This document shows positions 17,200-23,100 of a stretch of 64,000 nt of DNA, in pieces (within the stretch, counting starts at the first letter, position 1; the number at the start of each line of letters is the position of its first letter). This DNA comes from Macrostomum lignano. Its lineage: Eukaryota. Position numbers and translations under genes: made by a program. The notes below the pieces were generated by a model. It saw only the letters and a program-made list of their open reading frames with translations, searched no databases and was not told the origin of the DNA. The DNA lies in the NCBI GenBank assembly GCA_002269645.1, contig NIVC01002701.1, positions 1 to 64,000 on the forward strand, given 5' to 3'.

Positions 17200-20100
17200 A
17201 TGAGCATGGAACCCGCTGACCAGCATGAGCTGAGCTCACCTGTCAAGCAGTTCTGCAGCTACACAAGTGCTCACGGACTGGGCAGATTCTCTGAGCAGTC
17301 CAGCTTCATCGGCAGGTCACTATGGCTCACTTTTCTGTTGGCTACCTACAGCGGGTTCGGCTACCACCTGTACACCCTGTTCGACAGGTACCAGCAGGCT
17401 CCGGTGTTAACAACGATAACGGTGTCCACTCTGCCGTACCAGTTCCCGGATGTGTACATCTGCCCGACTCACGCCGTCACCATGAGTAGAATTGTTCCAA
17501 TGCTTTCTCAACGCGACATTTATAATGTTGAGCACGTTTCGAAAAGCAGCAATCCCAGCGAAAAGATTAAACTGTACGAATTTGACTTGTCGACACCCAG
17601 ACGCTTCTATCTAAACATGCCGACATATGCTTTTCTGCGTGCCTTAGAAGTTACGGAGCAGACAATGATAGATCAGCTACAGCCTTCAAAAAACGGTAGG
17701 GATTCTGCCAGATAATCTAGAAACCTTAAATCCATATACTCAAAATGACTCATATTCACTTCAGCCAAAAGAGGCTATGCCTGCCGGACCAGCCTAAATG
17801 GTGAGGAGTACATTGGAAACGCAAGCTCGGCAGCCGTCTATGGGGTCACTAGCTTTTCTTTGGAGTCTATCGACTACAGAAACACAGCTGGGCCACCTGT
17901 ACCGCCTTACATAGCCTACAGGCAGTGCATGCGATGGAATGATGCAGCACGCATGCTGCAGAGAGGAAGCTCGAATGCTGAAGTACTGGGTGGCTTGCTG
18001 ATAAAACTCAACTTCTCAGAGACTGAGTCCAGGTGCCGCTCACCTCCGGGTTTGCCGCTGACAGCGTTTCTCCCAATTGCAACTCGTAAGTGACTGACTT
18101 AGCGAGTGAGTGAGTGAGTAAGTGGAGTGAGTAAGTGAGTGAGTAAGTGAGTGAGTTCAAGAGTGAGTGAGTTCAAGAGTGAGTGAGTTCAAGAGTGAGT
18201 GAGTTCAAGAGTGAGTGAGTTCAAGAGTGAGTGAGTTAAGAGTGAGTGAGTTCAAGAGTGAATGAGTTAAGAGTGAGTGAGTTCAAGAGTCGCTCACTCA
18301 CTCACACACTCACACACTCACTCACTCACTCACACACTCACTCACTCACTCACTCACTCACTCACTCACTCACTCACTCACTCACTCACTCACACACACT
18401 CACTCACTCACTCACTCACTCACTCACTCACTCACTCACTCACTCACTCACTCACTCACTCACTCACTCATCCACTTACTCACTCACTCACTCACTCACT
18501 CACTCACTCACTCAATCAATCACTCACTCACTCACTCACTCACTCACTCACTCACTCACTCACTCACTCACTCACTCACTCACTCACTCACTCACTCACT
18601 CACTCACTCACTCACTCACTCACTCACTCACTCACTCACTCACTTACTCACTCACTCACTCACTCACTCACTCACTCACTCACTCACTCACTCACTCACT
18701 CACTCACTCACTCACTCACTCACTCACTCACTCTTAACTCACTCACTTAACTCACTCACTCTTGAACTCACTCACTCTTAACTCACTCACTCTTGAACTC
18801 ACTCAATCTTGAACTCATTCACACTTGAACTCACTCACTCTTAACTCACTCACTCTTAACTCACTCACTCTTGAACTCACTCACTCTTGAACTCCTCCCT
18901 CTTAACTCACTCACTTAACTCTCACTTAACTCACTCACTCTTGAACTCACTCACTCTTAACTCACTCAATCTTGAACTCACTCACTCTTGAACTCACTCA
19001 CTCTTAACTCACTCACTAACTCACTCACTCTTAACTCACTCACTCACTCACTCTTGAACTCACTCACTCTTGAACTCACTCACTCTTGAACTCACTCACT
19101 CTTGAACTCACTCACTCTTGAACTCACTCACTCTTGAACTCACTCACTCTTGAACTCACTCACTCTTGAACTCACTCACTTAACTCACTCTTGAACTCAC
19201 TCACTCTTAACTCACTCACTCTTGAACTCACTCACTCTTGAACTCACTCACTCACTCACTCAGTATTGAACTCATTCACTCTTAACTCACTCACTCTTGA
19301 ACTCACTCACTCTTAACTCACTCACTCTTAACTCACTCACTCTTGAACTCACTCACTCTTGAACTCACTCACTCTTGAACTCACTCACTCTTGAACTCAC
19401 TCACTCAGTATTGAACTCACTCACTCTTGAACTCACTCACTCTTGAACTCACCCACTCTTGAACTCACTCACTCTTGAACTCTCCCACTCTTGAACTCAC
19501 TCACTCTTGAACTCACTCACTCTTAACTCACTTACTCTTGAACTCACTCACTCTTGAACTCACTCACTCTTGAACTCACTCACTCTTGAACTCACTCACT
19601 CTTAACTCACTTACTCTTGAACTCACTCACTCTTGAACTCACTCACTCTTGAACTCCTCACTCTTAACTCACTCACTCTTGAACTCACTCACTCTTAACT
19701 CACTCAATCTTGAACTCACTCACTCTTGAACTCACTCACTCTTGAACTCACTCACTCTTGAACTCACTCACTCAGTATTGAACTCACTCACTCTTGAACT
19801 CACTCACTCTTGAACTCACCCACTCTTGAACTCACTCACTCTTGAACTCTCCCACTCTTGAACTCACTCACTCTTGAACTCACTCACTCTTAACTCACTT
19901 ACTCTTGAACTCACTCACTCTTGAACTCACTCACTCTTGAACTCACTCACTCTTGAACTCACTCACTCTTAACTCACTTACTCTTGAACTCACTCACTCT
20001 TGAACTCACTCACTCAGTATTGAACTCACTCACTCAGTATTGAACTCACTCACTCTTGAACTCACTCACTCTTGAACTCACTCACTCTTGAACTCACTCA

Positions 20101-23100
20101 CTCTTGAACTCACTCACTCTTGAACTCACTCACTCTTGAACTCACTCACTCTTGAACTCACTCACTCAGTATTGAACTCACTCACTCAGTATTGAACTCA
20201 CTCACTCTTGAACTCACTCACTCTTGAACTCACTCACTCTTGAACTCACTCACTCTTGAACTCACTCACTCTTGAACTCACTCACTCTTGAACTCACTCA
20301 CTCTTGAACTCCTCACTCTTAACTCACTCACTCTTGAACTCACCCACCCTTGAACTCACTCACTCTTGAACTCTCCCACTCTTGAACTCACTCACTCTTG
20401 AACTCACTCACTCTTGAACTCACTCACTCTTGAACTCACTCACTCTTGAACTCACTCACTCTTGAACTCTCCCACTCTTGAACTCACTCACTCTTGAACT
20501 CACTCACTCTTGAACTCACTCACTCTTGAACTCACTCACTCTTGAACTCCTCACTCTTAACTCACTCACTCTTGAACTCACTCACTCTTAACTCACTCAA
20601 TCTTGAACTCACTCACTCTTGAACTCACTCACTCTTTACTCACTCACTTAACTCACTCACTCTTAACTCACTCACTCACTCACTCTTGAACTCACTCACT
20701 CTTGAACTCACTCACTCTTGAACTCACTCACTCTTGAACTCACTCACTCTTAACTCACTCACTCTTAACTCACTCACTCTTGAACTCACTCACTCTTGAA
20801 CTCACTCACTCTTGAACTCACTCACTCTTGAACTCACTCACTCAGTATTGAACTCACTCACTCTTGAACTCACTCACTCACTCACTCAGTTTTGAACTCA
20901 CTCACTCTTGAACTCACTCACTCTTGAACTCCTCACTCTTGAACTCCTCACTCTTGAACTCACTCACTCTTGAACTCACTCACTCTTGAACTCACTCACT
21001 CAGTATTGAACTCACTCACTCTTGAACTCACTCACTCTTGAACTCACCCACTCTTGAACTCACTCACTCTTAACTCACTCACTCACTCTTGAACTCACTC
21101 ACTCTTGAACTCACTCACTCTTGAACTCACTTACTCTTGAACTCACTCACTCTTGAACTCACTCCCTCTTGAACTCACTCACTCTTGAAGTCACCCACTC
21201 TTGAACTCACTCACTCTTGAACTCTCCCACTCTTGAACTCACTCACTCTTAACTCACTCACTCTTAACTCACTCACTCTTGAACTCACTCACTCTTGAAC
21301 TCACTCACTCTTGAACTCACTCACTCTTGAACTCACTTACTCTTGAACTCACTCACTCTTGAACTCACTCCCTCTTGAACTCACTCACTCTTGAAGTCAC
21401 CCACTCTTGAACTCACTCACTCTTGAACTCTCCCACTCTTGAACTCACTCACTCTTAACTCACTCACTCTTAACTCACTCACTCTTGAACTCACTCACTC
21501 TTGAACTCACTCACTCTTGAACTCACTCACTCTTGAACTCTCCCACTCTTGAACTCACTCACTCTTAACTCACTCACTCTTGAACTCACTCACTATTGAA
21601 CTCACTCACTCTTGAATTCACTCACTCACTCACTCAGTATTGAACTCACTCACTCTTGAACTCACTCACTCTCGAACTCACTCACTCTTGAACTCACGCA
21701 CTCCATGTACTCACACAGGTCCCAGACGGGAAATAATTGGCTGCTTCCCAATGTCAGCGGACACGGCTTTCAACATCACGTGCTACAGCGGAGGCCTGGA
21801 GGCCTTTGAGCCGTGCGCCCAGTGCTGCGACAAGTTCAACGCTCCGTTTGCAGCGCTGCTGAACCGCGGCGACTGCCTCTGCGGCAGCTCCGAGGCCGCT
21901 GCCACTCTGACAGAAGGAAACCGGACCAGCTGCGACAGGCATTGCGGCAACAGCAAAACGGAGCCATGCGGATCAAACGGGACCGCTGCTGTTATGATTA
22001 TCCGGGATGTTGGTTTGTGTGCTGACAATGCTCTCATTGATTCTCCCGTCTAGGGCAAATTTTAGCTATCGGCTGTTTGAACTTGCGGATACTATGAGAG
22101 TTGCATCATGCTCTATGATGTCAGCTATTATTGGCTACAATGAGATGTCAGCTCTACAGTTTTTTTAATGTATTTCAGAGGACAAACCAATGCACATAGG
22201 TGAATCTAGTTTCTTGGAGGCTTTTTCGAGTGGGCCCTACTGCTTTTTCCTGGACTCTGAAAGGCTAAATGCTGGTCTGTGCGATGTTCCTTACTGCGGT
22301 GAGTGGACGGAATTGAGCAGTCAGTCAGACACACAGACAGACAGACAGACAGACAGACAGACAGACAGACAGACAGACAGACAGACAGACAGACAGACAG
22401 ACAGACAGACAGACAGACAGACAGACAGACAGACAGACAGACAGACAGACAGACAGACAGACAGACAGACAGACAGACAGACAGACAGACAGACAGACAG
22501 ACAGACAGACAGACAGACAGACAGACAGACAGACAGACAGACAGACAGACAGACAGACAGACAGACAGACAGACAGACAGACAGACAGACAGACAGACAG
22601 ACAGACAGACAGACAGACAGACAGACAGACAGACAGACAGACAGACAGACAGACAGACAGACAGACAGACAGACAGACAGACAGACAGACAAACAGACAG
22701 ACAGAACAGACAGACAGACAGACAGACAGACAGACAGACAGACAGACAGACAGACAGACAGACAGACAAAGGGAATGAAATTCAGCCCTCACTGCCGCAC
22801 TGCAGCCTCATCGGAAAAGTTCGACTGCGTCAAGAGCAACAGCCGCGCATCGCTGGCGCACTACACTGGTCAGATGAACCGGAGTCGCTCTGGCAAAGAC
22901 TGCATGCCATGGAGTCGTCTGTGGAATGTTCAAGAAGATATGATGTACTTTCACGGTGCGTGAAAGAAGCAGAAAAGGTTGTAGCAATATCGCCACGGGA
23001 TCTACAACATGAGCTCTCAAGCACTGTTTGAATTAAAATAAAAATAATAATAAGGCCAAATTAGTAAATGTACTGTTACAACCAACTTTATGAAAAACTC

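Follow-up and report, generated by a model that had tools for sequence, protein, structure and literature searches.

A WSC domain probably nested within a diverged kringle of DEG/ENaC channel genes in Macrostomum lignano

The stretch of Macrostomum lignano DNA analysed here (contig NIVC01002701.1, positions 1 to 64,000; hereafter the window) is of metazoan type, rich in satellites and with GT-AG introns that are short, and carries two head-to-head paralogous genes, A and B, for predicted DEG/ENaC channels. In both genes a single exon, exon 3, encodes a WSC domain and stands between two exons that together hold the six cysteines of a kringle-like module (kringle 1, K1); a second such module (K2) follows. 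We consider it likely that this arrangement represents an old and fixed WSC domain, acquired by exon shuffling and nested in a diverged kringle of a DEG/ENaC channel. To arrive at it, a class 1-1 WSC exon would have been shuffled into a phase-1 intron inside the kringle before the M. lignano subfamily diversified, and would since then have stayed in place as part of a composite K1/WSC unit, fixed, spliced in constitutively and held by linkers that are conserved. By the exon order, the WSC domain of the mRNA lies in the loop between the third and fourth cysteines (Cys3-Cys4) of K1, K2 (exons 5-7) follows, and the whole K1[WSC]-K2 block interrupts the extracellular domain of the predicted channel.

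Self-comparison of the window reveals an inverted duplication, in which copy A (~5.8-11.1 kb, minus strand) and copy B (17.2-26.4 kb, plus strand) face each other head to head. Exon models were obtained by six-frame translation and inspection of splice sites and comprise 11 exons per copy (Table 1). In gene B all introns show GT-AG borders and the open reading frame (ORF) of 1004 amino acids (aa) is unbroken; exons 2 to 4 of both copies have AG acceptors and GT donors throughout. A preliminary description of this DNA had placed Cys1-3 of K1 in exon 2, Cys4-6 in exon 4 and the whole WSC domain in a 294-nucleotide (nt) phase 1-1 exon between them, and these coordinates proved exact in both copies. 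The donor of gene A exon 10 is GA (5818-5819, minus strand) at a position where gene B has GT; the nearest in-phase GT lies 45 nt downstream (5773-5774), and its use would insert 15 residues immediately ahead of the conserved motif that precedes the second transmembrane (TM) segment.

The proteins of both genes are represented in UniProt by M. lignano entries A0A1I8G6R9 (gene B) and A0A1I8HN37 (gene A), each identical to our model across the common exons. In the ab initio models A0A1I8G6R9 (P0001), A0A1I8HMR1 (P0003) and P0012, exon 4 (22179-22298) is skipped or truncated and the WSC exon is kept. With exon 4 wrongly missing or cut short in these public models, the annotation conceals both the kringle and its nesting: the only UniProt names for proteins of the family are 'Amiloride-sensitive sodium channel' and 'WSC domain-containing protein', with the kringle parts and their interruption unannotated.

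The identity of the host protein was evaluated from profile matches and motifs. The gene B protein matches the Pfam family ASC (PF00858) with E=2.7e-44 and 152.4 bits (cut-off 23.6), and its model shows an HG motif, a pair of TM segments and, ahead of TM2, a GxS motif. When the insert is left out, the best solved relative of the gene B channel is FaNaC (PDB 7yvb, E=1e-17), and ASIC and ENaC chains are aligned as well. By these matches the host of the WSC and kringle exons is a DEG/ENaC channel, a context that the preliminary description had missed. The insert amounts to about 380 residues with 22 cysteines and sits between two FaNaC-aligned blocks, behind TM1 and an initial extracellular segment; in the Pfam ASC profile, the K1[WSC]-K2 block falls at positions ~129-150. 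From this placement we take the insertion site to be the finger region of the extracellular domain. This upper extracellular region is the most variable one in DEG/ENaC channels and is known to accommodate extra segments, e.g. the inhibitory tract/GRIP domain of ENaC and the extra domains of nematode degenerins.

Exon 3 of gene B, taken alone, matches the Pfam WSC family (PF01822) with 29.2 bits (cut-off 27.8); within the full gene B protein the score is 24.6 bits, and the WSC domains of paralogues reach 39.1, 41.4 and 43.0 bits. All eight canonical cysteines are present, together with two further ones (ITC and the second C of QCC). Both had been pointed out before (as ITCY and QCC) and are real additions, given that in a reference set of 60 WSC domains, all taken from other proteins, 57 have eight cysteines. 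An AlphaFold model of residues 162-405 of the paralogue P0011 (predicted local distance difference test, pLDDT, 82.9; predicted template modelling score, pTM, 0.73) was compared with known structures by using Foldseek. Here, the modelled WSC domain superimposes on that of yeast Wsc1 with a template modelling (TM) score of 0.80 and a root-mean-square deviation (rmsd) of 2.0 Å over 96 columns (E=7e-6), and Kremen1 is matched with E=1e-5. Profile matches and model together make the prediction that exon 3 encodes a true WSC domain a solid one. Another model, computed for a P0004 segment from four sequences, was unusable (pLDDT 47), and its Foldseek matches to Kremen1 and Wsc1 were non-significant. 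In P0012, a B-like M. lignano copy from outside the window, ITS replaces ITC, so that one of the two additional cysteines is missing and the one in QCC would have no partner; genuine variation, decay of this copy and an error of assembly are all conceivable.

In kringles the disulfides pair Cys1 with Cys6, Cys2 with Cys4 and Cys3 with Cys5. Three cysteines of K1 are contributed by exon 2 (in C..G..Y.G, QCMRW and SRCR.P) and three by exon 4 (in GPYCFF and LCDVPYC), and K1 as well as K2 has exactly six cysteines in all paralogues. Because the flanking parts each hold an odd number of cysteines (3 + 3) and the WSC exon holds ten, the flanks would have to be cross-linked to each other, as the kringle pattern requires.

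To compare the two modules with classical kringles, we used profiles built from seven paralogues and plasminogen K1-K5, the plasminogen query being 100% identical to PDB 4a5t. In a global hhalign alignment, K1 without the WSC domain is aligned with the plasminogen kringles over 79 of 81 columns (pairwise E=1.6e-5). The six cysteines and the motifs G..Y.G, C..W, CR.P, GP[YW]C and C.[VI]P.C are hereby brought into register with plasminogen, the exon 2 part occupies kringle columns 1-55, and the point of WSC insertion falls in the Cys3-Cys4 loop. The local alignment of the same profiles is restricted to the C-terminal third (23 columns, E=1e-4). K1 and K2 align with each other in register over 90 columns, which extend from Cys2 to Cys6 and bridge the site of WSC insertion (E=4e-4), and K2 aligns with the plasminogen kringles over 71 columns (E=1.6e-4); the hhalign probabilities of these K1 and K2 comparisons are just 35-57%. 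When the K2 profile was searched against the PDB, the top 44 matches were all kringles (best E=1e-3). In a shuffle test with 300 shuffles per segment, scored against a hidden Markov model (HMM) of plasminogen kringles for seven paralogues, the observed score of the exon 4 part of K1 and of K2 was reached by none of the 300 shuffles in any paralogue. Taken together, these data support, if weakly, a kringle assignment in which the C-terminal third of K1 is clearly kringle and the N-terminal part marginally so.

K1 departs from classical kringles mainly in the length of its loops. Its successive cysteine spacings are 41-51, 32-36, 37, 12-14 and 4 residues, compared to 20, 27, 10-11, 11 and 4 in plasminogen. 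We therefore regard K1, with good though incomplete confidence, as a kringle-derived module with greatly lengthened loops and the WSC domain in the Cys3-Cys4 loop. The proposal that one domain is inserted within another is thus supported by the cysteine counts (3 + 3 versus ten), the six-cysteine profile alignment, the register between K1 and K2 and the order shared by the paralogues. It had also been proposed that skipping of exon 3 would restore a contiguous kringle. This holds in so far as the frame is kept (907 codons to the normal stop) and the two halves are joined; the resulting Cys3-Cys4 spacing of 37 residues is not canonical.

A number of results weigh against an old WSC insertion in a true kringle. 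The K1 profile finds no significant match in the PDB by hmmsearch (best E=0.41), and in the shuffle test the observed score of the exon 2 part was reached by 0-17 of 300 shuffles and is hence marginal. The cut-off of the Pfam Kringle family (PF00051; 34.3 bits) is never reached, the maximum being 17.7 bits for the proteins of the window and 22.1 bits for the paralogue fragment P0161; this strong divergence had escaped the preliminary description. In the P0011 model the stretch from Cys2 to Cys3 forms two helices, which classical kringles do not have, and Foldseek with the whole P0011 model returns a kringle over 22 columns only (E=1). This model, moreover, is that of a paralogue and neither of gene A nor of gene B, and the same applies to the RNA-derived gene models considered below, which exist for paralogues only and for neither A nor B themselves. 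The UniProt ab initio models of A and B disagree on exon 4, and gene A may be defective or use an unusual splice site at exon 10. Finally, the function discussed below is one that we wholly infer.

Part of these results would be accounted for if exons 2 and 4 did not form one kringle at all, exon 2 instead encoding a partly helical cysteine module of its own and exon 4 a kringle remnant, with the WSC domain not nested in either. Pfam and the PDB profile search see a kringle in the C-terminal third only (the sub-threshold Pfam Kringle matches are confined to the C-terminal end in K1 and to the N-terminal half in K2), the two helices in the exon 2 part are confidently modelled, and this part is without a Foldseek kringle match. 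However, an exon with three cysteines cannot have all of them paired internally, and globally all six cysteines align with kringles together with the G..Y.G, C..W and CR.P motifs. Moreover, the alignment of K1 with K2 from Cys2 to Cys6 spans the insertion point, and the pTM of 0.73 indicates a single compact unit. We thus deem two separate modules unlikely. Three further observations concern the detection of the kringles. A paralogue fragment that scores below the Pfam cut-off nonetheless bears the UniProt name 'Kringle domain-containing protein'; a regular-expression scan of 150 WSC proteins found no canonical kringle; and a word-indexed database search with the profile of K1 minus WSC, which returned nothing at E<=0.001, failed to recover even members of its own family and is hence uninformative.

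Another possibility is that exon 3 is a regulated cassette, so that isoforms with and without the WSC domain exist side by side, with differences in gating or in the ligands bound. Exon 3 is compatible with such a role in its length of 294 nt, its phase 1-1 borders and the ORF that stays intact after skipping. Its donor reads GTTTGT in A as well as in B and thus departs from the purine that usually occupies position +3, in gene B the exon follows a 3.6-kb satellite intron, and A and B are not themselves covered by RNA-derived models. To evaluate this possibility we considered the database proteins that contain both flanks of the WSC domain. All ten retain it, the distance from Cys3 to GPYCF being 116-151 residues in each, and none is a WSC-less isoform. 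Six of the ten are RNA-seq-derived paralogue models with the WSC domain between the kringle halves (Mlig013355g1, Mlig006398g1, Mlig007204g1, Mlig028168g1, Mlig034226g1 and Mlig026586g1). The underlying BOX15_Mlig models in GenBank stem from a genome-guided RNA-seq assembly with StringTie/TACO, with ORFs called by TransDecoder (PMC5730564). The protein clusters of the A and B models have one member each.

Nor does the exon structure single out exon 3. In gene B, exons 2, 4 and 5 are likewise of phase 1-1 and could be skipped in frame; the WSC exon is hence not set apart by its symmetry. Phase 1-1 symmetry is, moreover, a general mark of exon-shuffled extracellular modules (PMC8001218). Exon 5 of gene A has the same GTTTGT donor, and the argument from a weak exon 3 donor was discarded on that ground. 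The A and B copies of exon 3 do not count as independent cases either, given recent gene conversion between them (synonymous divergence, dS, 0.046), and skipping would leave a loop of 37 residues where kringles have 10-11. A splice switch, as suggested in the preliminary description, is thus unsupported, and we consider a regulated cassette rather improbable. Instead, both the conserved linkers and the pTM of the entire K1[WSC] unit (0.73) suggest that the WSC domain is a constitutive and integrated component.

The age of the nested arrangement was assessed from its distribution. An HMMER scan of 1.84 billion representative proteins with a profile of the exon 2 part of K1, the WSC domain and the exon 4 part returned whole-profile matches solely from M. 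lignano; the other ~380 matches cover the WSC part alone. The M. lignano proteins fall into at least seven paralogue groups, which are 37-72% identical in K1 and share the nested order. At two paralogous loci the WSC domain is again encoded by a single phase 1-1 exon between phase-1 exons (276 nt at locus L001, 300 nt at locus L002), and the phase-1 exon borders are identical at the three loci compared. Since layout and exon borders are the same even in paralogues with no more than about 35-40% identity, the insertion would be older than the diversification of the subfamily. The linkers flanking the WSC domain show zero indels in seven paralogues, whereas other K1 loops vary in length, which suggests that the linkers are built to hold the WSC domain.

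Divergence between A and B is a mosaic, dS being lowest in exon 3 (0.046), intermediate in exons 8-10 (0.19-0.27) and highest in exons 4-7 (0.84-2.9) and exon 11 (1.17). This pattern indicates patchy gene conversion between the head-to-head copies. The tract of high identity around exon 3 reaches into the flanking introns (8996-9377 in A versus 21660-22041 in B, 92.7%). As the near-identity of exon 3 reflects recent gene conversion, it provides no evidence of constraint, and its ratio of nonsynonymous to synonymous divergence (dN/dS 0.90; 12 differences at dS 0.046) was dropped as a selection signal, the tract having been recently homogenised. Exons 4 and 6, in contrast to this, show dN/dS values of 0.08-0.09 at high dS, exon 4 having 0.08 at dS 1.45. 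That exon 3 is a chance ORF or pseudo-exon, or the locus a dead duplicate, for which the GA donor of gene A exon 10 and the inconsistent UniProt ab initio models might speak, is very improbable and close to refuted, considering the eight canonical cysteines, Pfam match, canonical splice sites and correct phase in A, B, L001 and L002, the inclusion of the WSC domain in RNA-derived paralogue models, the fully intact gene B and the low dN/dS of exons 4 and 6.

Kringle and WSC domains are paired in one well-described family, Kremen1/Kremen2 (Kringle-WSC-CUB; PDB 5fws, 5fwt, 5fwu and 5fwv), where they likewise form part of the extracellular region of a membrane protein. In Kremen1 the two domains are packed in one rigid unit (PMC5014086). 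In Kremen, however, the WSC domain follows the kringle in tandem, whereas in genes A and B it is located inside the Cys3-Cys4 loop. Kremen has a CUB domain and a single TM segment, the M. lignano proteins have no CUB match in Pfam and two TM segments; Kremen is a Wnt co-receptor, the M. lignano host an ion channel by its predicted identity. Superposition of Kremen1 on the P0011 model is poor beyond the WSC domain (rmsd about 14 Å, TM score 0.35). With yeast Wsc1 (PDB 7pz2) and other WSC domains, the M. lignano domain has the fold and the eight canonical cysteines in common; it differs from them in its ten cysteines, in being embedded in another domain and in its location in an animal ion channel. 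The WSC domain of Wsc1 is described as the extracellular domain of a cell-wall mechanosensor, and WSC domains serve as sensors that bind carbohydrate or the wall (PMC9024836).

Classical kringles, such as those of plasminogen (K1-K5), tPA, HGF, prothrombin and ROR1/2, share with the M. lignano modules the order of the six cysteines, the motifs and the flanking phase-1 introns. M. lignano K1 differs from them in loops that are 20-27 residues longer, in its sub-threshold Pfam scores and in the domain inserted in its Cys3-Cys4 loop. In plasminogen kringles this loop contains the acidic residues that bind lysine. These residues are absent from M. lignano K1 in the global alignment, and classical lysine binding is therefore unlikely. 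Likewise, the idea of two ligand specificities, between which skipping of exon 3 was to switch, finds no support, the WSC-interrupted loop being without these residues. With DEG/ENaC channels, the nearest being FaNaC (PDB 7yvb and 8on7), the proteins of genes A and B share the HG motif, two TM helices, the GxS motif and a cysteine-rich extracellular domain; the solved or described members that we found have neither kringle nor WSC domain, in contrast to A and B. Three other DEG/ENaC genes of M. lignano showed no response to FMRFamide-type peptides in a study in which kringle and WSC domains are unmentioned (PMC9234716).

Several repeats and neighbouring elements were noted in the window. The repeat in intron 2 of gene B (18108-21703) consists of about 213 copies of the 16-mer ACTCACTCACTCTTGA, after a short reverse-complement block, whereas intron 2 of gene A contains (AGTC)130 (9359-9878), so that the repeats differ between the copies. 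Intron 4 of gene B (507 nt; repeat at 22318-22768) consists of (CAGA)112 and is open in frame; its retention would read as QTDR repeats. Between the channel genes, an ORF on the minus strand (13824-14402) has sub-cut-off matches to DUF3504 (27.9 bits, cut-off 29.7) and Phage_integrase (18.5 bits, cut-off 27.1), and in our own interpretation may be what is left of a Crypton-type element. The minus strand a short way beyond the end of gene B (29403-30525) holds two ORFs that overlap, differ in frame and match reverse transcriptase (RVT_1); judged by these matches, this is a frameshifted retroelement remnant. The region 46484-50672 on the plus strand combines a PSI match, a weak sub-threshold Sema match and several WSxWSxW-type motifs with a subsequent hydrophobic segment, and we read it as a probable semaphorin-5-like gene.

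Table 1. Positions of the two predicted channel genes and of their exons in the window.
Feature	Position	Strand	Length and phase	Content	Basis
Gene B	17200..26790	+		DEG/ENaC (FaNaC-like) channel gene, predicted, with K1[WSC]-K2 extracellular insert	spliced model, Pfam ASC
B exon 1	17200..17695	+	phase-1 end	N-terminus, HG motif (SAHGLGRF), TM1, FPDVYIC, start of extracellular domain	
B exon 2	17765..18085	+	321 nt, phase 1-1	N-terminal two-thirds of putative kringle 1, Cys1-Cys3	
B intron 2	18086..21718	+	3633 nt	nearly all satellite	
B exon 3	21719..22012	+	294 nt, phase 1-1	whole WSC domain, 10 cysteines	
B exon 4	22179..22298	+	120 nt, phase 1-1	linker and C-terminal third of putative kringle 1 (GPYCFF...LCDVPYC), Cys4-Cys6	
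B exons 5-7	22806-22955, 23742-23874, 23961-24091	+		putative kringle 2, six cysteines, long loops	
B exons 8-11	24648..26790	+		remaining DEG/ENaC extracellular domain, pre-TM2 motif (GxS), TM2, C-terminus	
Gene A	5245..11100	-		inverted paralogue of B, also 11 exons	1011-aa conceptual ORF
A exon 2	9884..10219	-	336 nt, phase 1-1	putative kringle 1, Cys1-3	
A exon 3	9025..9318	-	294 nt, phase 1-1	WSC domain, 10 cysteines; 96% nucleotide identity with B copy	
A exon 4	8829..8948	-	120 nt, phase 1-1	putative kringle 1, Cys4-6	

What the nested module does can be approached from its position and its parts. DEG/ENaC relatives bind ligands or regulators in this part of the ectodomain. K1[WSC]-K2 would then be a disulfide-rich extracellular module for binding glycan, matrix or protein, placed where relatives receive their ligands or regulators, and its effect would be either on gating or in tethering the channel. 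The most economical reading is that of a module for binding or tethering through which gating is modulated. Going further, we tentatively propose that a Macrostomum-specific DEG/ENaC clade has acquired a kringle[WSC]-kringle receptor on its finger domain that would bind a glycan, a protein or a matrix component and serve as sensor, for gating or as extracellular mechanosensor tether, a possibility which we rate as doubtful at present. If true, these channels would be the first members of the DEG/ENaC superfamily with an integrated carbohydrate- or matrix-binding domain, and with K1 a kringle would for the first time be known to accommodate a further domain between Cys3 and Cys4. In the literature searched we found no description of a kringle hosting another domain, nor of a DEG/ENaC channel with kringle and WSC domains. 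Domain insertions as such are common, one source putting them at about 20% of multidomain proteins (PMC13114784). What is new here would hence be the nesting in a kringle and the DEG/ENaC host; domain insertion and the tandem arrangement of kringle and WSC, as in Kremen, are already known.

For protein evolution, the predicted arrangement would offer a clean, datable case of exon shuffling with a nested rather than tandem outcome, in which the host module kept its six cysteines. For ion-channel biology, it would define a lineage-specific DEG/ENaC subfamily of at least seven paralogue groups, found in M. lignano only. Since M. lignano is tractable by transgenesis (PMC5730564), gating of these channels by a ligand or tether would be directly testable.

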